Notes: generated from the sequence alone by a model not told the origin. DNA of 64,000 nt from Paramoeba atlantica (GCA_977017575.1 CDRNVI010000050.1:41506-105505); one strand, 5' to 3'; counted from the stretch's first letter, positions 35,930 through 64,000 are shown. Translations and numbers: made by a program.

Positions 35930-35976
35930 ACAAATCTGCCTATCCTATCCTATCCTATAAGACCGATTTGCATCGG

Positions 35977-38900
35977 TTAAGAACACATCCGTTTTTGTCG
36001 TCGCTTCGACGTCTTTCTCTCAGGTGAATTCGCCCTTTCATGCTCCTTGTCCGCTGAACCGGGCGTGGTACGTCTTTCATGCAACTTTGTATTTTTGGCA
36101 TCACATTCCTCAGGCAAACACTCTTTCTTTTCAGGAGAATCCACTCCAGTCTCTACAGGTGGCGAGGTACCCTTTTTGGAGAGAGGATCACCTTCTGCAA
36201 TCTTGAAGTAATCCCGTCTTTTCCCTAATGGCTTAGGTATTTGGCCACAGTGTTTCCGAGGACGATTCATGGCTTGAACGGTTTCTGAGCTAACCCTTTG
36301 AGCTTCTGAGGCACTTGTCGCAGTCTTTCTCCTCTTTATTTCTGAGGCTGGGACTATTTTTCTCGACCCTGCAAGCGCCAAGGTGTCTGCCTTCTCATTG
36401 TAAATGTTCCCGTTGTGGGATTTCACTTTGCACACGTAACACCTTTTATCCATCGATTGGAGCGTTCGAATTTCCCGATCCAATTTCTCAAGGATACCCC
36501 CATTCGGTAGATTGTGATACCCAATGATTCGCCGTCGTAGACGAGTATGATGGAAGAAATTCCATACATAGAACGAATCGGTGTGTATGACAACTGTTTG
36601 AGCCTCATTAGGTATCCTGTCCAGCGCTTCCCTCAGCGATTCAACCTCAGCTCTCTCAGCTGAGCCAGCATCCAATGCTATGGAATAGTATTTGTCTTCT
36701 GTTCCACTCATTCTCAGAACTATTCCCGCACCGGATCTTTGTTCCTTGGACCCCCGCAACTGCCGAACAGAGCCATCAATATACATATGAACCTCACCCT
36801 CACTCATGGGGAACGGATCCGAGCCTTCCTCCACAAATTGTAGCTCATAAGAGCTTTTGCTTTTGACCGCTTGAGTGTGTTTAGTTTTCCACCTTGGAGA
36901 CCTTAATACCTCATACATCGGAAGTGGTTCAAGTTTCTGCCTGAGCTCATCGCATAGCTTTTGCCAGTGTATCCGATCCTGCGAGTAAACAAGCGCCTGC
37001 TCCAGAGTGACCCCTAGATCATTAAAACTTGCTTCGCTAGGAGAAATATTTCTTGTTTTTTCCGTGCTATTCCATTGAACGAGCTCGCGAAACGTAGAGG
37101 AGTGCCTGAGCATGTGGCCAACGATTTTCGCACGGGCAACACGATGCACGGTCGAAAATCGAGGCGTACCACAATACAAGGACTCTAATGGGTAGCAGTG
37201 TCCGAAATCGTCAAGCTTTGCTGAGTTACAAGCGAATCTCCTCATCATATTTACCTCAACCTCCGTTTTTCGAAGCATTTTGTTAGAAAGAGAAAGACAG
37301 GCTGCACCAAACGTTAAAATAGGGTAGATCAAGCAGTCAAACAGGCGTATTTTCGTGGCAGCACTCAGAGGAGAAGCCCAAATGCCACTGAGTTTACGAA
37401 ATGCTGCCCATGTGAGCCTTAACCTGTCCTTGATGGGGGATGATGCTGTAGCATCTTGAAGATGACCAAGATGCCGGTAGGAATCCACAAGAGGAATCTT
37501 GCCAAGCGATCCTGCTCGAAGTTCTCGCGTCCCCCCCGGAACTTTCCCAAAGGCCATCCACGCAGTCTTGGTTTTCCCCACGGCAATCCTCAGATTAGCT
37601 GGTTTTGCCTCATTTGCCGTAGCTTCGATCATTTGCGATATTTCATGTTTCGTGGAAGCTAAAAGTGCTATGTCGTCTGCGTAGTCGATGTCCTTTAGTC
37701 TAAATTTTTGAATTCCCCTGCTTTTCGTCCCGCTGCTCCTTAGAAGAATCCCGAGCGGCTTGTTATCGAGTGCTTTGTTGAGAATCCTATCGATTACAAG
37801 CACAAAGAGATAAGGAGCAAGCACGTCCCCTTGAAGAATTCCTGTTTCAATGGGAAAAGAATCCGTATTTCCGTATGGTGTGCGGACTATTCCTTTTAAA
37901 TCCGAGTACAAGGACATTACCATCCTAGTAAGCGCGGGTCCGACATGAAAGGCATTCAATGCAGCACGGATCGCATGAAACGATACCGAGGGGAATGCTT
38001 TTGCGAAGTCCATGAATGCCACTGCAATGCCTTTCTGGCCCCTGGTCGCACGAACTCTTGCATCATTCAAAATGATTTGCGCCCCTGCCGTGGACCTTTC
38101 TGGCCGAAAACCAAATTGACTGTCGCGAAGGAGCGGCTCGATGGATGGTCTGATTCTTTTCAGGATCATTGCATTCATCAATTTAACCGCACTGTTCACG
38201 AGACAGATTGGCCGCCAATTCGCTATTTGTGTCAGGTCGCCTTTTTTTGGAATAGGCACCTGAAGGACAATTTTCCAGGACGCAGGCGAAACCCCTGTTC
38301 GATGAACCTCGTTTATAATATGTAATAAGGATTTTCTCAGCTCAGCATGTTCTGTGATCATTCTGAGTGCCTCCGCCGGAATTTGGTCTATTCCAGGTGC
38401 CTTGTTGCGCGCTAGTCTAATGATGCCGCCCTCGAGCTCTTCTACAGTGAAACTTTCATCGTTGATTGGTACTTTCGGGCTGACTACTTTGTCAAATTTT
38501 ATATCTTTATCTCCGCGATCATCGGACCCCATACGAGCAAAGAAATCTTTAACAATGTTAAGAGTTTCCCTTGTCGACGAGGTCTCGATGCAAAGAGTCT
38601 CCCTGTACAAACCGCAAATTCTACGTAGCGTACGCCACGGATTAGAACGGTTTCGCCGCAGACCTGCTTCAATTTCGGCGCATTCTTGCCCAATCTGCGC
38701 CTCAATTTCTTCTCCGTGCTCTTTTAGCACTTCCTTGAAGTGGTCCGGTTTTCGACTCTGAAGAAATAAGTCGCGAAACCCTGAGATGCGCGGTGTTTCT
38801 GTACCCGGTGGTGTGGTTTCTGTCCCTGTAGGTGCGTTGGTCGTTTTTGTGGTTCGGTCCTTTTTTGAGAGTCTTTTCGCTGTGTGTACCATATTTTCCG

Positions 38901-40569
38901 ATAAGTGTTCCCATGTGATCTCTTCCTCTTTCTTCGCCATTTCCCACACTGCTTGCTGGAAGGATGCCTTCTTCTCTTCATCTCCAAGTCTTGGCCAGGG
39001 TACCTTGCTTTGCCCCCCTGTACCTTTAGAACGCCACTTGATTTTCACATCCGCCATAACGACGCAGTGTACTGTAGGCACTGGCGCCTTGAGTACTTTG
39101 TGCCTCCTAATGCTGGAGGCAAAGCGCTCACTGACCATGATGTGGTCAAGCTGTCTCCGCACCTTGTTGTCCCCACGCCTTTTGCTACCTCCCTTTTTGC
39201 CGACCTCCCCTTTTACGTGCATGTACTCGCAGGCCTTGTCCCCATTTTCCTCTCCTTCCCTTCCCCTCTTCACCATACCGTTGTTATCCGTCCCCTCTGG
39301 CTCTGATCCTTTCCTTCCCATTTCCACCTTTCCTTCTTCCCCCTTCTGCCCCAGCTTCTCTGTTCCTACGTTGCGACGGTCCTTTGTCTCCGCCCTCCTG
39401 CCCGGCAGCTCACATGTCCATTTCCTCTTGCTCGGGCAGAGGGTGTGTGCTGACTTACAGCCAATGGAGCACAAGAGGCCTTTCAGCTGAGAGACCGCTG
39501 GGGGATCCATGCTCGGATTCGTCACGAGCGTTATCGGTGCATTGAAATCCCCCATGACCAATAAAGGTCTTCGTTTCCGTTCAGCCTTGACCTCACGACA
39601 CGCCTTGTCCAAGTCACCCAGAAATGCCGCATGAACGGCTTCTGAGGAGTCCCGTATTGGGGCATAGACATTGAACAAAGTGCCGGTCCCCTCTTCCAGG
39701 GGATACTCAGCTCCCATCACCCTGTTGCTCACCATCCAAACCTTCCGAAACGCATGCCGGCTCACTATGGCCATGCCATTATATGAATCGCGTGCGGCGG
39801 CCGACTGCAAATACAGGTGAAACCTCTCCCCTAGGTTTTCAACCTGCCTGTAGAGGATTCCATCCTCATGTCCTTCCTTCGAGAAATTGTATCTGGTCTC
39901 CTGAAGGCACATGACACCAACCCCCCTTACCTGCATGAAAGCAAGCACCTCGTTCAAACGGGTGCATCTTCGAAGAGAGAATTCATCTTCCCCCTCGAGT
40001 TTTAACGTCGTAACATTAAGCGTTGCAACGGTGGTGTTCTCCTTCACAGCGGAACCTTTGAGGTTCTCCGAATCTCGTTGGGCGTGTGTGCCACGCGACG
40101 CCCAGTGTGACCGAGGGCGGTGACGGGAGCTCCTTCGTTTCGCCTTTGCCGGGTTACTCACCTGCACCGCGCAGAGCACGACACCTGTATTCGGTAAGGG
40201 GGGAAAGGGGAGAGTCGTGTGCGGCCTCGCCACGTACCGAACACGAAATGTACCGGCCAAAGGTTCACCTCGAGTTACCGAGGATCCCCCCTGAGTATGC
40301 CAGCCTACGCTTTTCAGATAAGCCGGCCCCTCACACACGACCTCGCCCTCCCAAACAAACAAAGTGTCGCAACAGTTGTCGTGTCTCCACGCGACGCGAA
40401 GATGAGCCCCAACGCGGACAAACTTACAGAGCGCCCGCACCGCCCTCAGGCGGAGTTTAGCAGGCCCCTCTCGCTCGGGTGAACGAAAGATGACCCCCCG
40501 ACCACGCTTGGTCCGTGTAAGGGTTTCAAAAACCTCTGTCCCCTTACACGTGCCGGAAGCATCCGCCAT
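35977..40569 (-). CDS. Intact LINE polyprotein (1530 aa): unknown N-domain, APE endonuclease, reverse transcriptase, RNase H
   Basis: APE: LNVTTL, CLQETR, NVYAP, MGDFNA, QLDHIMVS. RT: NWRPICL, QFGFRPERST, DFAKAF, LQGDVLAP, YADD. RNH: YIDGS, AERAE, HTDS, SHNG...NEKADTLA. Confidence 0.95.
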   Translation of the reverse strand: MADASGTCKGTEVFETLTRTKRGRGVIFRSPEREGPAKLRLRAVRALCKFVRVGAHLRVAWRHDNCCDTLFVWEGEVVCEGPAYLKSVGWHTQGGSSVTRGEPLAGTFRVRYVARPHTTLPFPPLPNTGVVLCAVQVSNPAKAKRRSSRHRPRSHWASRGTHAQRDSENLKGSAVKENTTVATLNVTTLKLEGEDEFSLRRCTRLNEVLAFMQVRGVGVMCLQETRYNFSKEGHEDGILYRQVENLGERFHLYLQSAAARDSYNGMAIVSRHAFRKVWMVSNRVMGAEYPLEEGTGTLFNVYAPIRDSSEAVHAAFLGDLDKACREVKAERKRRPLLVMGDFNAPITLVTNPSMDPPAVSQLKGLLCSIGCKSAHTLCPSKRKWTCELPGRRAETKDRRNVGTEKLGQKGEEGKVEMGRKGSEPEGTDNNGMVKRGREGEENGDKACEYMHVKGEVGKKGGSKRRGDNKVRRQLDHIMVSERFASSIRRHKVLKAPVPTVHCVVMADVKIKWRSKGTGGQSKVPWPRLGDEEKKASFQQAVWEMAKKEEEITWEHLSENMVHTAKRLSKKDRTTKTTNAPTGTETTPPGTETPRISGFRDLFLQSRKPDHFKEVLKEHGEEIEAQIGQECAEIEAGLRRNRSNPWRTLRRICGLYRETLCIETSSTRETLNIVKDFFARMGSDDRGDKDIKFDKVVSPKVPINDESFTVEELEGGIIRLARNKAPGIDQIPAEALRMITEHAELRKSLLHIINEVHRTGVSPASWKIVLQVPIPKKGDLTQIANWRPICLVNSAVKLMNAMILKRIRPSIEPLLRDSQFGFRPERSTAGAQIILNDARVRATRGQKGIAVAFMDFAKAFPSVSFHAIRAALNAFHVGPALTRMVMSLYSDLKGIVRTPYGNTDSFPIETGILQGDVLAPYLFVLVIDRILNKALDNKPLGILLRSSGTKSRGIQKFRLKDIDYADDIALLASTKHEISQMIEATANEAKPANLRIAVGKTKTAWMAFGKVPGGTRELRAGSLGKIPLVDSYRHLGHLQDATASSPIKDRLRLTWAAFRKLSGIWASPLSAATKIRLFDCLIYPILTFGAACLSLSNKMLRKTEVEVNMMRRFACNSAKLDDFGHCYPLESLYCGTPRFSTVHRVARAKIVGHMLRHSSTFRELVQWNSTEKTRNISPSEASFNDLGVTLEQALVYSQDRIHWQKLCDELRQKLEPLPMYEVLRSPRWKTKHTQAVKSKSSYELQFVEEGSDPFPMSEGEVHMYIDGSVRQLRGSKEQRSGAGIVLRMSGTEDKYYSIALDAGSAERAEVESLREALDRIPNEAQTVVIHTDSFYVWNFFHHTRLRRRIIGYHNLPNGGILEKLDREIRTLQSMDKRCYVCKVKSHNGNIYNEKADTLALAGSRKIVPASEIKRRKTATSASEAQRVSSETVQAMNRPRKHCGQIPKPLGKRRDYFKIAEGDPLSKKGTSPPVETGVDSPEKKECLPEECDAKNTKLHERRTTPGSADKEHERANSPERKTSKRRQKRMCS

Positions 40570-49278: not shown

Positions 49279-49550
49279 AAAAGTTTCCACCAGTGGGGGC
49301 CATGTTCAACAGGACGGGAAGTTCACCGTGTTCTGCCAACCCAGTGCGGCGGCACTTGTGAGCTGCTCCGTTTCCGGCCTGGCCCGGTTCAGTGCACGTT
49401 ACACGCAGGGCAACCTCTGCGCTACCGCAGATTCTCCCCGGTACCACACTGTAAGGGAGGCGGCGAACTTCCCGTCCATTAAGAACAGGTGCCACGGCGA
49501 ATCCTTATTTCGCTGCCCAAAGGGTGACAGGTTTGGAACCCCAGCACCCC
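49279..49550 (-). ncRNA. 7SL: Full-length eukaryote-type SRP (7SL) RNA, ~270 nt, ending in TTTT
   Basis: Helix 8 GGGC-CAGG-CCG-GAAA-CGG-AGCA-GCTC; helix 6 TCTGCG-GTAG-CGCAGA (GNAR loop); long helix 5 GGACGGGAAGTTCGCCG / CGGTGAACTTCCCGTCC; small Alu domain GCTG-GGGTTCCAAACC-TGTCA(UGUNR)-CCCTTTGGG-CAGC. Confidence 0.88.
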
Positions 49551-54029: not shown

Positions 54030-54915
54030 GGGGGAGTCCAGGGGGGGGGTCCAGGGGGGGGTCATGGTCGAGCAAATTGTTTATTTCGAAAAAAATAGTT
54101 TTCGAAAACAAACCGCAGAAAGGGTAGCCGGGGTCTTGGCGCGCATTTTCCACCCCCTTACCCGGGGGTGATCCCCCCGCGTATCCGCAGGACGGGTCCG
54201 CCAAATTCGGAATTTTTCGGAAAAAAAAATTTGAAAAAAAATTTCAACTTGGCGAAAAAAATGGCAAAAAAAATATTTTTCCAAAATCGTTTCCCCTATT
54301 GTATTTTGATAGTTTGGGACCTACACTAGCTTGCTCCTCAGTTGTTTTCGCAAGGCATCACTTCTTCTAACCGTGGTGTGGCCCTCAAAATGACACATTT
54401 TTGACTAAAGAAGGTGAAAAAGTATTTTTCGGACCTAAAGGGGCATTTTTGTGTCGAAAGAATCCAATCCAATCCAAATCATTCCGGATTGCTCCGGATG
54501 GTCACTGGCAAGCCAGACCCTTCACAAACAGATTTGGAAGTTCCGAGGCCGACGTCCTCTACCTCTAGTCGAAAGAATGGTATGGTTGGAGTCGAATTCT
54601 CTGCCCAATACGTTTGGTAGGCTTCCATTCATGCCTTAGAGTGTTCCATTCATGCCTTTCAGGCTTTCCATTCATGCCTAAGAGTGATTTCCCACGCGCA
54701 AATGTCGGATTTAGTGCTCTGACAGCAAAAATACGCGAAAATCACCCCATTTTTACCCGAATTTCGGCTATTTTTGGCTATAATCTTTCCGTTTTCCAGG
54801 CTAATTTTCCTTTTATAGGCTCTTTGTTAAACGCGGCGGTAGTTTTCAACGCGAAGCGCGCAGCATGAGTGACTTCTACGTTGAAAACAACCACCGCGTT
54901 TAACGAAGAGCCTAA
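54030..54915 (-). repeat. Long-hairpin repeat copy carrying a SINE insertion
   Basis: Palindrome at ~54815-54915; body colinear with the other copies except for the insert at 54464-54567. Confidence 0.85.
54464..54567 (-). mobile_element. 5'-truncated SINE with 11-bp TSD
   Basis: GTCGAAAGAAT at 54453-54463 and 54568-54578; SINE 3' end with TCCGGA-GCAA-TCCGGA and (GGATT)n tail. Confidence 0.85.
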
Positions 54916-57760: not shown

Positions 57761-57975
57761 TCAGGGAACCAGCCCCCCTACCCGGCTTACACCTCTTGGG
57801 TGAGCCGTGTTGACGTACAGTTCGTCGACGCAGCGTGTTGGCAACAGCATGTTGGTGCCGCCTTGGACAAGCGGAAACTGGTAGAGGACGTCGGCTTCGG
57901 AACTTCCAAATCTGTCTGTGAAGGGCCTGGCTTGCCAGTGACCATCCGGAGCAATCCGGAACGATTCGGATTTTT
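57761..57975 (+). mobile_element. SINE 3' half (diverged copy)
   Basis: Colinear with 63.56-63.79 kb; ends ccggagcaatccggaacgattcgga plus a T-run; no TSD found. Confidence 0.8.
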
Positions 57976-57989
57976 TTTTTTTGCGATGA

Positions 57990-58803: not shown

Positions 58804-61667
58804 GCTCAAAACAACGGGTTTAACTAAACCTTTGTTTTTTTGAACATTTTCAAAAATATGGCGGAGGCGCCCGGGCCTGCACAGCTAGGAATTATTAACC
58901 TTCTGTTTAGGTCCACGTTAGGTCGGGGTGCTCTGTTTGACCCGATGTTGGTGTCAGACGGGCATGCTAAACTTCGCTCCCTTGCAGTGATGAGCATTAG
59001 TAAAATTATTCGCCCAGGTTACAACATCGCACTCTGCTGGAGATACGCGAGCAGTGCGGAGTTTCGGATTTGGAAGGGCACTGTAACTCAACGAAGGCCT
59101 GGTTTCCTCTTTCAGCTAGGTCGCTGGCGGGTAAAGTACCACCAGCGATCGGAAACGCTTCCCTTTCCGCCGTATGATTCGCGAATCGTGTTATGCGGAG
59201 CACGCATTCGAAAACCTGGGCGTTCGAACAACCGTAGAAAAGCACGGAAAACTAGGGTACTGTGTGGCAAGCATGCCCTACGCGACGACGACCCGAAAGG
59301 GTCTGCTGTGAAGAAGTGTCTGGCTGTAGGCACTCTTAATACGACATCATTGAAACTTGAAGGTGACGACGTTTTCAAACTGAAAGCTTCTGCTCGATTG
59401 CACGAGATTGTGCGATACATGTCACAAACCAACTTGCATATACTGGCTCTCCAGGGGACAAGGTTTACTTTTACTTCTGGCGAAGGATTTGATATTTTAA
59501 AGCGCAAGCTTCGACACGGGAATAAAATCTTTTTCATCTACCTTATGTCTGCAGTGAAAGGGTATAACGGTATGGGGTTCATCACGCAAGAGCCAATAAA
59601 GGCGTGGAAAGTAAATGATAGGATAATTGCCGGCGAGTTCAACATCGAAGGAGGGTCAGCCTTTATGCTCAACGCATATGGGCCGACGCGTGACTCCCCA
59701 GAGGAGGCCAAACAAGAGTTTGATATTTCTTTGACAAACGCGTTTCACGAAGCAGTAGGCAAAGCCCCTCGAAGACCCGCACTTCTACTTGGGGACTTAA
59801 ATGCACCTCTCACTTTCGGCAAAACGACAGAAGAAGACGAACTTGTTGTTGAAAGGTTGAAGGGGCTTTTGGAAGGGATAGATTTCAAATCAGGACACTC
59901 CTTATGCCCTAGCAAGCGAGTATGGACATGCATATTGCCTAATGATGCTAAACGCCAGTTGGATCACATTGCAGTGTGCCCACGCTTTGCATCAGCTCTG
60001 CGACATCATCAAGTTTTTGCCGCTCCTACGCCGACAGTGCACTTTCTTGTGCGAGCAGAGATTCGAATCAAATGGAAGATATCGTCCAACATCAAAAGAT
60101 CGAAAATACACTGGTTTCAATTATCAAACACAGAACATGCAGAGAAGTTTAACAACAGAATTTGTGAACAGGTCGCAGCGCAACTGCATACAGAAGATCT
60201 TCCTTCCTGGGATCTTCTTGCCTCTTGCCTTCGATCTTCGGGAAAGGAAATTCCGAAACCAATCACAAAAATATCTCTTGATATACAGGCACCTGTTGAA
60301 GGATTGCAAGGTGCTGAAACAGATAACCTACGCAACATTTTCATGCAAAGCAAAAGGTATAAGGACTTTAATGAACTAGTATCACACAACAGGGGAGCAA
60401 TCGAGGATGCTATAACTAGGTCTTGTGAAGTCCTAGAATCTAAGATGAAGAAAAATCACGCCAGCCCATGGAGAGCAGTAAAAGAAATATGTGGAGTTGA
60501 TCGAGAAGACTTCAACATACCGGGGACCTCAAACAGACAGAGGCTGGCGGAGATAAAAACGTTTTTTGAAGCTTTTGCTGGAGACACAGGGGGCGACGAC
60601 AATATAAGATTCTTAGAGGCGAATCTTCCAACAAACACACCTGAGGACGCCCCTTTCACTGAGGAAGAGCTTCGAAGCGGAATTTCACACTTTGGGGGGG
60701 GTAAGGCACCGGGAAAGGATGAAATCCCCATGGAGGCTTTTGCGTGCATCGTTGATAATGATTATCTTAGAAAGTGGTTGCTCAGCATTATCAACCGGGT
60801 TTACGATACGGGATTGGCTCCGGAAGTTTGGGGTGACGTCCTATAAGTTCCGATACCGAAGAAAGGTGACTTGACTCTTTTAAAGAATTGGAGGCCCATA
60901 TGCTTAGTAAATTGTGTTGTTAAACTTATGAACTGTTTAATATTACAACGAATTCGTCCGTATGTAGAGCCTGTGCTTCGCCATAATCAATGTGGGTTCA
61001 GACCTGACCGTTCGACAATGCAAGCCCAGGCGATTCTCAACGAAGCACGAGTAAAAGCATTAAGAGGAAACGGGATGTGCATTGGTTTTGTAGATTTTTC
61101 GAAAGCTTTTCCATCCGTTTTATTTAGTGCCATTCATGCATCCCTAGTGGCGTTTCACATTGGACCGAAATTGCGAGAAATGATTATGTCAGTATGTCGG
61201 AATATGCGAGGGGTCGTGCGAACATCATATGGTTTAACAGAAACATTCCCCATTACAACCGGCATTCTTCAAGGGGATGTCCTCGCTCCCTACCTCTTCG
61301 TAATGGTTCTGGATCGTATATTAAGCAAAGCTATTGATTCAAAATCCCATGGCATCCTTCTATCACCCAAAGGTACCAAGAGCAGAGGCCTGAGGGAAAC
61401 ACGTCTTACGGATCTAAATTATGCTGATGATCTTCTTTTCTTTTCAGATAACAAGGCTGATCTACAGAGTATGATTGAGGATACAGCGGAACAAGCCCTC
61501 TCCGCGAACCTAAGAATAGCAGTAGGCCCTGCTAAAACAGCGTGGATGCAACTAGGAAGGCAACGAGGCCCCGATGAAATGATATCTGATCCTTTGGGGA
61601 CGGTGCTCAAAGTACTTTCCTATAGGTATCTGGGAAATCTTTTCCATGAAACTGAACCATTGGCATG

Positions 61668-62186
61668 AGTACATGAGGTGGCGGAGTGGCAAGAACTCAA
61701 AGTTTGAAGCACATGGTGCCCAGACGGCGAGTTCAAACCCACTCATCGCAATATCCCCGGCGGCCTCACTCTAAGAGGCTGGGCTGATAACCGACTAGGC
61801 CCAGTACTCGGAGGACCGTCCCGGACCCTCCCCTCAGGGAACCAGCTCCCTTAGTACGGAGGTGGCGGAGTGGCAAGAACTCAAAGTTTGAAGCACATGG
61901 TGCCCAGACGGCGAGTTCAAACCCACTCATCGCAATATCCCCGGCGGCCTCACTCTAAGAGGCTGGGCTGATAACCGACTAGGCCCAGTACTCGGAGGAC
62001 CGTCCCGGACCCTCCCCTCAGGGAACCAGCTCCCTTACCCGGCTTACACCTCTTGGGTAAGCCGTGTTGACGTACAGTTCGTCGGAACTTCCAAATCCGT
62101 CCTCGGAACTTCCAAATCTGTCTGTGAAGGGTCTGGCTTGCCAGTGACCATCCGGAGCAATCCGGAATGATTTGGATTTGGATTTG
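61668..62186 (+). mobile_element. tRNA-headed SINE (duplicated head, internal deletion) with 14-bp TSD
   Basis: GAACCATTGGCATG at 61654-61667 and 62187-62200; heads at 61675 and 61858 with A box TGGCGGAGTGG and B box GAGTTCAAACC; tail (GATTTG)x3. Confidence 0.85.
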
Positions 62187-62264
62187 GAACCATTGGCATG
62201 TATTAGGGACAGGTTGCGACTTACGTGGGCAGGTTTCTCAAAATTTCGGGGCATATGGGTATCG

Positions 62265-62660
62265 GATTTTCCGGATTGCTCCGGAGATAAAGAACTCCGG
62301 ATGGTCACTGGCGAGCCAGACCCTTCACAGACAGATTTGGAAGTTCCGAGGCCGACGTCCTCTACCAGTTTCCGCTTGTCCAAGGCGGCACCAACGTGCT
62401 GTTGCCAACACGCTGCTGGGACGAACTGCACGTCAACACGGCTCACCCAAGAGGGGTAAGCCGGGTAAGGGAGCTGGTTCCCTGAGGGGGGGGGTCCGGG
62501 ACGGTCCTCCGAGTACTGGGCCTATTCGGTTCTCAGCCCAGCCTCTTAGAGTGAGGCCGCCGGGAATATTGCGATGAGCGGGTTTGAACTCGCCGTCTGA
62601 GCACCATGTGCTTCAAACTTTGAATTCTTGCCACTCCGCCACCTCCGCCGCTATCCCCCG
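62265..62660 (-). mobile_element. Full-length tRNA-headed SINE (~396 bp) with 12-bp TSD
   Basis: ATATGGGTATCG at 62253-62264 and 62661-62672; cloverleaf-like head GCGGAGG...TCATCGCA; 3' TCCGGA-GCAA-TCCGGA hairpin. Confidence 0.88.
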
Positions 62661-62745
62661 ATATGGGTATCGCCCTTGAGCGTCAAGACAAAACTTCGTT
62701 TTTCGATGCCCTCGTATACCCTATCCTAAATTACAACTCGGGCAC

Positions 62746-64000
62746 ATGTCGGAATATGCGAGGGGTCGTGCGAACATCATATGGTTTAACAGAAACATTC
62801 CCCATTACAACCGGCATTCTTCAAGGGGATGTCCTCGCTCCCTACCTCTTCGTAATGGTTCTGGATCGTATATTAAGCAAAGCTATTGATTCAAAATCCC
62901 ATGGCATCCTTCTATCACCCAAAGGTACCAAGAGCAGAGGCCTGAGGGAAACACGTCTTACGGATCTAAATTATGCTGATGATCTTCTTTTCTTTTCAGA
63001 TAACAAGGCTGATCTACAGAGTATGATTGAAGATACAGCGGAACAAGCCCTCTCCGCGAACCTAAGAATAGCAGTAGGCCCTGCTAAAACAGCGTGGATG
63101 CAACTAGGAAGGCAACGAGGCCCCGATGAAATGATATCTGATCCTTTGGGGACGGTGCTCAAAGTACTTTCCTATAGGTATCTGGGAAATCTTTTCCATG
63201 AAACTGAACCATTGGCATGAGTACATGAGGTGGCGGAGTGGCAAGAACTCAAAGTTTGAAGCACATGGTGCCCAGACGGCGAGTTCAAACCCACTCATCG
63301 CAATATCCCCGGCGGCCTCACTCTAAGAGGCTGGGCTGATAACCGACTAGGCCCAGTACTCGGAGGACCGTCCCGGACCCTCCCCTCAGGGAACCAGCTC
63401 CCTTAGTACGGAGGTGGCGGAGTGGCAAGAACTCAAAGTTTGAAGCACATGGTGCCCAGACGGCGAGTTCAAACCCACTCATCGCAATATCCCCGGCGGC
63501 CTCACTCTAAGAGGCTGGGCTGATAACCGACTAGGCCCAGTACTCGGAGGACCGTCCCGGACCATCCCCTCAGGGAACCAGCTCCCTTACCCGGCTTACA
63601 CCTTTTGGGTAAGCCGTGTTGACGTACAGTTCGTCCCAGCAGCGTGTTGGCAACAGCACGTTGGTGCCGCCTTGGACAAGCGGAAACTGGTAGAGGACGT
63701 CGGCCTCGGAACTTCCAAATCTGTCTGTGAAGGGTCTGGCTTGCCAGTGACCATCCGGAGTTCTTTATCTCCGGAGCAATCCGGAAAATCCGATACCCAT
63801 ATGCCCCGAAATTTTGAGAAACCTGCCCACGTAAGTCGCAACCTGTCCCTAATACATGCCAATGGTTCCAAATCCAAATCCAAATCATTCCGGATTGCTC
63901 CGGATGGTCACTGGCAAGCCAGACCCTTCACAGACAGATTTGGAAGTTCCGAGGACGGATTTGGAAGTTCCGACGAACTGTACGTCAACACGGCTTACCC
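62746..64000. repeat. Duplication of 61194 onward (offset 1552) whose right part is inverted relative to the first copy
   Basis: 62746-~63630 repeats 61194-~62080; 63796-64000 is the reverse complement of ~62055-62264. Confidence 0.9.

Follow-up and report, generated by a model that had tools for sequence, protein, structure and literature searches.

The stretch analysed here, called the window throughout, comprises 64,000 nucleotides (nt) of an assembly listed as Paramoeba atlantica (GCA_977017575.1, CDRNVI010000050.1:41506-105505), and positions are counted from its first letter. Towards its right end lies a non-LTR (long terminal repeat) retrotransposon of the long interspersed nuclear element (LINE) type, on the plus strand at 58840-61667, which was delimited by domain search and paralogue comparison and encodes APE and reverse transcriptase (RT) domains. 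This host element has received two copies of a short repeat, a candidate tRNA-derived short interspersed nuclear element (SINE), which is the subject of this report. The repeat family inserts in the manner of LINEs, has been recently active, begins at a defined 5' end and closes with a structured 3' signal whose architecture it shares with LINEs.

Insertions in the window

Copy 1, delimited from the window sequence and repeat comparison, is an atypical full-length SINE at 61668-62186 (plus strand) with a GGATTT-GGATTT-GG tail, and its 14-nt target-site duplication (TSD), GAACCATTGGCATG, stands at 61654-61667 on the left and recurs at 62187-62200 on the right. Copy 2, at 62264-62660 on the minus strand, is a single full-length unit of the common long form; its 5' junction carries ~10 extra nt and its tail is a short variant. 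Its 12-nt TSD, ATATGGGTATCG, occupies 62252-62263 on the 3' side and 62661-62672 on the 5' side. The two copies, opposite in orientation, lie within the one retrotransposon (58840-61668), whose paralogous copies (L075, L077 and L078) run uninterrupted across both sites and contain each TSD string once. Because these paralogous sites are empty, copies 1 and 2 are precise insertions with TSDs of 14 and 12 bp. Logan contigs assembled from public runs contain the same two joints, with 14 and 12 shared (ambiguous) letters, and I do not count them as independent because they most likely come from paralogous LINE copies.

Copy 1 is odd in two respects: its first 184 nt, head and body together, are doubled in tandem, and it lacks a 65-nt segment that all other sampled copies (30 loci) possess, a deletion private to this copy. 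The head of the first unit lies at about 61675-61750 (plus strand), and the same head recurs in the second unit at 61857-61934 (plus strand), where it was placed by direct reading, by a pairwise match to tRNA-Leu(UAG) and by alignment to a tRNA model; the A and B boxes of this second head fall at 61863-61873 and 61913-61923 on the same strand. The 3' recognition module of copy 1, at 62151-62186 (plus strand), reads stem TCCGGA, loop GCAA, stem TCCGGA, spacer ATGATTT and then (GGATTT)2GG, and was delimited by folding and by alignment and pair counts against LINE 3' ends.

Two further copies in the window are truncated at the 5' side. One consists of the last ~100 nt of the element (54464-54567, minus strand), with a (GGATT)3 tail and the 11-bp TSD ATTCTTTCGAC, and the other of the last ~215 nt of the long form (57761-57983, plus strand), with a T13 tail, for which a clear TSD was not found.

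The insertions in the host LINE are also caught up in a rearrangement. A tandem duplication with a period of 1552 bp covers 61194-62745; its junction (62745/62746) shows an ATG microhomology, and the duplicated material, which spans 61194-64000 in all, consists of a LINE fragment and SINE copies. Its second unit, recognized by repeat comparison at 63220-64000, holds a copy 3 (plus strand, doubled head, long-form tail) as well as the tail of an inverted SINE copy that is cut by the contig end. In this unit a segment of 435 nt, lying between the two inverted SINE bodies, is flipped (62055-62489 and 63566-64000 are 99% complementary), and the structure reaches the contig end at window base 64000; it may reflect a SINE-mediated inversion or an assembly problem.

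An initial annotation of the window, made from the sequence, had named five occurrences (54464, 57761, 61668, 62265 and 63221), and the element is indeed present at each. The copy at 63221 is not an independent insertion because it is part of the 1552-bp duplication. The TSDs of 11, 14 and 12 bp that it reported were recovered, the latter two being proven by the empty LINE sites, as were the 5'-truncated copies. Its element length of ~396 bp has to be revised to a typical 380-395 nt (~385 nt), with copy 1 as an atypical case.

A young family dispersed through the genome

Counting genomic copies, as had been proposed, yielded 241 matches to a 35-mer from the head and 298 to a 35-mer from the tail (≤2 mismatches) in the 45.7-Mb assembly of 248 contigs, with none for the reversed controls, so the numbers greatly exceed chance; as results of pattern searches these counts are lower bounds where copies have diverged. 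The copies are dispersed over many contigs, all of which, among the matches listed, are contigs up to about C109. Some copies repeat at regular intervals of 6485, about 1995 and 5438 bp (C12:137274-163248, C21:765701-781437 and C54:730498-752283); these sit in larger tandem units, so the counts are slightly inflated.

Junctions were compared in 26 distinct full-length copies with their flanks. In 21 of these a TSD of 7-27 bp (median 12) could be found. The element canonically starts with GCGGAGGTGGCGGAGTGG; 0-6 extra nt usually precede it, and a few copies have longer additions there. On the 3' side it invariably closes with ...CCATCCGGAGCAATCCGGAATGATTTGGA and a tail that varies, being either a T-run (up to 20) or a series of GGATT/GGATTT repeats; many TSDs start with ATT or GATT and thus overlap the tail repeat. 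The 365-nt cores of the sampled copies share a mean pairwise identity of 97.3% (range 92.9-99.7%), and four diagnostic positions divide them into several subfamilies, so that more than one source copy has probably been active.

No ATG-initiated open reading frame (ORF) is present in the SINE. A 109-codon stop-free stretch was considered as coding sequence and set aside as a chance occurrence: it contains no Met, and 10 of 28 copies interrupt it. Nor was a spliced-leader sequence found at the start of the element in the copies examined. The family is therefore short, non-coding, dispersed and multi-copy, and it bears the footprints of target-primed reverse transcription, namely TSDs, variable 3' tails, 5' truncations and empty sites. 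It is a young, non-autonomous, LINE-mobilised retroposon and not a fragment of a larger element. The initial description of a short non-coding retroposon, bounded by TSDs and mobilised by LINEs, is borne out by the TSDs, the empty sites and the copy number, and the concern that it might be an internal piece of a larger transposable element can be laid aside.

Some 5' junctions are more elaborate. In three of the 26 copies the first 18-20 nt are present in 4-5 tandem copies at the junction (L010 1432-1516; L012 1417-1516; L020 1715-1775), and one copy has an inverted head start there (L002/L003 5' junction). The repeated junctions suggest repeated template switching or slippage at the RNA's 5' end, where GGAGGTGG and GGAGTGG nearly repeat. 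The head of a separate copy (L093 1-50; G000:C109:46220-46270) is a variant, TGGCCGAGTGG, more like a real tRNA, and this copy begins 9 nt past the apparent 3' end and TTTT of a tRNA gene; since this case is single, I claim no target preference.

A 3' module of LINE-like architecture

The 3' end of the SINE consists of a 6-bp stem (TCCGGA/TCCGGA) closed by a GCAA loop, a 7-nt spacer (ATGATTT) and a run of GGATT or GGA(T)n. A comparable arrangement ends an intact LINE in the window, LINE-A, whose ORF (35977-40569) encodes APE, RT and RNase H and whose 3' end (35946-35980, minus strand) comprises stem ACCGAT, loop GCAA, stem ATCGGT, spacer CTTATA and (GGATA)n; folds, alignment and pair counts mark it as a candidate partner-type module. 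With the C-terminal 350 residues of LINE-A as query, many LINE families were retrieved in tiers of 98-100, 73, 52, 48, 43 and 37% identity, many of them with intact ORFs of about 1400-1500 residues. In a survey of ten LINE 3' ends, which is a sample and not a census, LINE-A and five of the ten families end in a 5-6-bp stem, a 3-5-nt loop, a 5-7-nt U-rich spacer and GGATT or GGATA repeats.

When the SINE was aligned with six LINE 3' ends, all 42 of the 42 stem cells paired and four of the six pairs were changed on both sides. The covariation score was 0.627 as against 0.233 in shuffles, none of 500 of which reached it, and shifted registers paired at 45% or less. The SINE loop, GCAA, is also the loop of LINE-A, which is abundant and intact, and the SINE's GGATT repeat unit is that of L079, a LINE-A relative of 73% identity that has a GAAA loop.

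The LINE that received copies 1 and 2 was considered as a partner and rejected: its family ends in a different hairpin followed by (GTGA)n and has nothing in common with the SINE. Other LINE families (L085, L087 and L075-L078) end in (TG)n, (TGTA)n or (GTGA)n, each after a hairpin of its own; given these differing tails and hairpins, the genome holds several distinct types of LINE 3' recognition. Adjoining the 5' region of LINE-A, a match to signal recognition particle (SRP) RNA was observed at 49279-49544 (minus strand; Metazoa_SRP model, 74.6 bits).

A tRNA-Leu-like head

The first ~80 nt of the SINE resemble a tRNA gene. An A box, TGGCGGAGTGG, at +8 fits TRGCNNAGTGG at 11 of 11 positions and a B box, GAGTTCAAACC, at +58 fits its consensus at 10 of 11, so that both stand where a tRNA would have them, and the distance between them is that of class-II tRNAs, which have a long variable arm. 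The acceptor-like strands GCGGAGG and TCATCGC pair at 6 of 7 positions, and the 5' ends of SINE copies coincide with tRNA position +1. Every motif that the initial annotation had named (the A box, GTTCAAACC, the AGCAC-ATG-GTGCT hairpin and the two acceptor-like strands) was found.

A pattern search for tRNAs with long variable arms identified the nuclear tRNA-Leu(UAG) and tRNA-Leu(CAA) of this genome, the former at L089 33-116 with a second copy in L091. Among 31 distinct tRNAs the best global match of the head is tRNA-Leu(UAG), with a score of 21, followed by a Ser tRNA with 12; for 500 shuffled heads the maximum over all tRNAs averages 7.7 (standard deviation 1.8), and the top value is 16. 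Head and tRNA-Leu(UAG) are identical at 60 of 75 aligned bases, the identical stretches including GGCG.AG..TGGC.GAGTGG, the hairpin at the variable-arm position, GGCG..GTTCAAACCC and the 3' acceptor strand, so the likeness takes in the unusual TTCAAAC loop and the acceptor ends of this tRNA. With the boxes frozen and the other segments shuffled, the tRNA-Leu(UAG) score was reached by 56 of 5000 shuffles, and five other class-II tRNAs treated in the same way showed no excess (z 0.4-1.7). The similarity to a host tRNA is thus significant, and modest beyond the boxes. I also built a class-II covariance model from eight Leu and Ser tRNAs of the assembly, the E-values of which are rough, and it aligns end to end exactly on the head.

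Class-II length, the TTCAAACCC T-loop region and a hairpin where the variable arm would be are common to the head and the tRNA-Leu(UAG) gene, and their acceptor ends are similar. They differ in that the SINE head has no D or anticodon stem, has a shortened anticodon arm, is passed over by tRNA finders and lacks the TTTT terminator that follows the real tRNA-Leu gene. Judged by these sequence features, the head probably descends from tRNA-Leu(UAG) or a close relative and would have kept only what a promoter needs. The Leu/Ser-like type-II head proposed at the outset accordingly stands as far as boxes, spacing and the tRNA-Leu(UAG) match are concerned, and it does align to one tRNA of the host, but its cloverleaf has decayed.

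The stretch immediately downstream, SINE positions ~85-170 (for example L025 1561-1646, minus strand; L019 1583-1668), also aligns to the class-II model from end to end, with four cloverleaf-like stems and without an A or a B box. It may be a second decayed tRNA or, as this is a model alignment, a chance effect of GC-rich structure. For the body, ~250 nt long, no origin could be traced.

The host is a kinetoplastid

Two full-length KMP-11 genes (PF03037, 150 bits each) are present on the SINE-bearing contigs C2 and C12, and none of 14 control genomes contains one. The 19-nt core of the kinetoplastid spliced leader has 11 matches at one mismatch, as against none for the control, and lies within a 39-nt leader-like string. 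In the window, nine consecutive large ORFs from 7.7 to 25.7 kb are on the same strand and intron-less; tRNA genes are tightly clustered and on both strands. The KMP-11 genes, the spliced-leader motif and the same-strand ORFs identify the host as a kinetoplastid, as had been supposed from the window; taken alone, the spliced-leader motif would be compatible with a diplonemid too. The wealth of transposons suggests a host of the free-living type. Homologue searches for the LINE gave one EukProt match and no trypanosomatid names, and a protein atlas yielded bacterial ClpB clusters only.

A 39-nt leader-like string (L061 1482-1519) follows an A-run just upstream of an ORF start, and it looks like the retrocopy of a trans-spliced mRNA rather than a spliced-leader RNA gene. 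The assembly also contains contigs that are unlike kinetoplastid nuclear contigs (C108-C133 and C137-C185 of G000; for example L031-L046). About 20 small contigs repeat the same AT-rich tRNAs of bacterial type and look organellar, and a second odd set has dense, repeated clusters of Lys, Ser, Ile and Asp tRNAs. Among the matches listed no SINE falls on these odd contigs, which therefore probably derive from another organism or compartment.

Proposed mechanism and its alternatives

What sort of element do these features describe? With rather more confidence than doubt, I interpret the repeat as a SINE of ~385 nt in which a head derived from a class-II tRNA, a body and a LINE-like 3' module are joined, and which would be transcribed by RNA polymerase III (Pol III) and captured by a LINE. 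Judging from the A and B boxes, Pol III would initiate at the base equivalent to tRNA +1 through these internal boxes, would read through the head into the body, since no T-run follows the head, and would stop in the T-rich tail. Termination there would explain why SINE tails often contain T-runs when LINE tails are regular repeats. A LINE reverse transcriptase specific for its own 3' hairpin and GGAU(U/A) repeats would then capture the SINE RNA, as the shared, covarying module indicates, and copy it into nicked DNA by target-primed reverse transcription; the capturing enzyme would presumably belong to the LINE-A group. With architecture alone in common, no single partner LINE can be named.

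Several results weigh against this interpretation, most of them concerning the head. ARAGORN reported no tRNA in the window or in the SINE loci, and the Rfam tRNA model (RF00005) had no match in the head, even when 106 nt were searched at E≤10, so that the Infernal-type check that had been suggested came out negative; Rfam cmscan, whether run at gathering thresholds or at E≤10 and whether given 1.1 kb or 106 nt, likewise detected no tRNA, 5S, 7SL or small nuclear RNA in the element. The minimum-energy fold of the head is one long bent hairpin, not a cloverleaf. True tRNAs reach 22-83 bits under the class-II covariance model, as against no more than 6.6-13.8 bits for the head, whose D stem (2 of 3 pairs) and anticodon stem (3 of 5) come out broken in the alignment; its score is no higher than that of one unrelated region in the same 32-kb search and is matched by the next ~86 nt of the SINE, which have no boxes and score 10.5-15.7 bits. 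Because a box-less neighbour scores as high, the model score is weak evidence, and neither a recognisable cloverleaf nor a convincing covariance-model match was obtained. The 31 tRNAs compared are a sample and not a census, and the likeness to tRNA-Leu outside the two boxes (p~0.011) is uncorrected for these 31. As for transcription, Pol III activity from the head is predicted from the promoter boxes; the absence of internal T4 runs is uninformative as a sign of Pol III, 67% of shuffles being equally free of them. The one run that may be of RNA contained no contig of the region, a result that carries no weight in either direction. Finally, no primary sequence common to the SINE tail and the LINE ends was found beyond the loop and the repeats; for this reason I regard the SINE as mimicking how a LINE 3' signal is built, and not as containing a LINE tail taken over by copying.

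Among the alternatives, the one that survives best accepts a LINE-mobilised, SINE-like retroposon but holds that its head is not derived from a tRNA, that its boxes arose by chance or convergence, and that its RNA comes from the pervasive polycistronic transcription of kinetoplastids by RNA polymerase II (Pol II) or from some other promoter. The silence of the standard tRNA detectors, the covariance-model score of the box-less neighbouring segment and the single long hairpin of the predicted fold are what it would lead one to expect. It fits less well with an A box that is perfect over 11 nt and a B box that matches at 10 of 11, both at tRNA positions and with class-II spacing, with a head that is closest specifically to one resident tRNA, including its unusual TTCAAAC loop and acceptor ends, and with a sharp 5' end at the tRNA +1 equivalent that bears no spliced leader. 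I consider it unlikely, if worth keeping in mind.

Less plausible still, and in my view improbable, is that the head is mainly an RNA-processing signal, with long Pol II transcripts being cut at the acceptor-like stem, in the manner of RNase P, and the 5' end thereby set. Kinetoplastid genomes are transcribed almost throughout, the SINE 5' ends coincide with a mature tRNA 5' end and the acceptor-like stem is paired at 6 of 7 positions, all of which would suit such cleavage. An RNase P substrate needs its T arm and D arm, however, and both are degraded here; no data favour processing over a promoter role.

A third possibility is a deletion derivative of a LINE, with head and tail as the two ends of an autonomous element, in the manner of RIME (from ingi), NARTc (from L1Tc) or SIDER. 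Short retroposons of no other kind have been described in trypanosomatids, and the LINE-like tail architecture would be accounted for, yet I reject it as very improbable, because head and body have no sequence match to the window LINEs or to four 9-kb LINE loci, the SINE does not start like Pr77 (CCCTGGCTCAGCCGG, the primer sequence in PMC4748587) and the tail shares the architecture of LINE ends and not their sequence.

Relation to known retroposons and significance

The nearest studied parallel to the tail is the stem-loop and short-repeat tail of stringent LINEs and their SINEs, as in the eel pair UnaL2/UnaSINE1 (PMC1636434, PMC4176376). Like other tRNA-derived SINEs with a LINE-type tail (SINE2/tRNA), the element described here joins a head with A and B boxes to an unrelated body and a 3' stem-loop with short repeats common to LINEs, and TSDs, 5' truncations and subfamilies occur in both. 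It differs from them in its kinetoplastid host, in a tail that is LINE-like by architecture only (a compensatory stem, a GNRA-type loop and GGATT repeats) and not by a common stretch of sequence, in tails rich in T-runs and in a head without D and anticodon stems.

The known short retroposons of kinetoplastids, RIME, NARTc and SIDER, are likewise short, non-coding, LINE-dependent and flanked by TSDs. They are deletion derivatives of ingi/L1Tc that start with Pr77, a Pol II promoter combined with a hepatitis delta virus (HDV)-like ribozyme (PMC4748587, PMC4035085), which agrees with their portrayal in the initial annotation as LINE derivatives and not tRNA-derived elements. In contrast, the element described here opens with a tRNA-like head, does not start with Pr77 and has a body that is not derived from a LINE. 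Published kinetoplastid mobilomes contain only ingi/L1Tc, CRE/SLACS, VIPER and TATE together with LINE-derived Pr77 short elements (PMC12278014, PMC4728078, PMC4748587); in a 2025 survey that covered 57 trypanosomatid genomes, as in the genome paper on Bodo saltans, only ingi, CRE/SLACS, VIPER and TATE appear, and the Diplonema genome paper mentions SINEs only by analogy. A search of the full-text literature, which did not extend to Repbase and Dfam, returned nothing relevant on tRNA-derived SINEs in kinetoplastids or Trypanosoma, so the suspicion that such an element was undescribed for the group has held up. By its features the element would belong to a classical kind, the tRNA-type SINE whose tail is of LINE type, and I found no description of one from this lineage.

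Whether Kinetoplastea (and Euglenozoa, as far as searched) have here their first Pol III-type, tRNA-Leu-derived SINE, recently active, mobilised through the hairpin and (GGAUU)n signal of a whole set of resident LINE families and perhaps equipped with a dimeric tRNA-type head, I regard as evenly poised. If so, it would extend classical Pol III SINEs to kinetoplastids, in a member of the free-living type, and would offer a natural test case for Pol III promoters amid near-total polycistronic transcription. With the covarying 3' hairpin common to several LINE families, it would provide a compact system in which to study template choice by LINE reverse transcriptases. Finally, the ~300 near-identical copies may act as drivers of rearrangement in this genome, as the duplication and inversion at the contig end illustrate.

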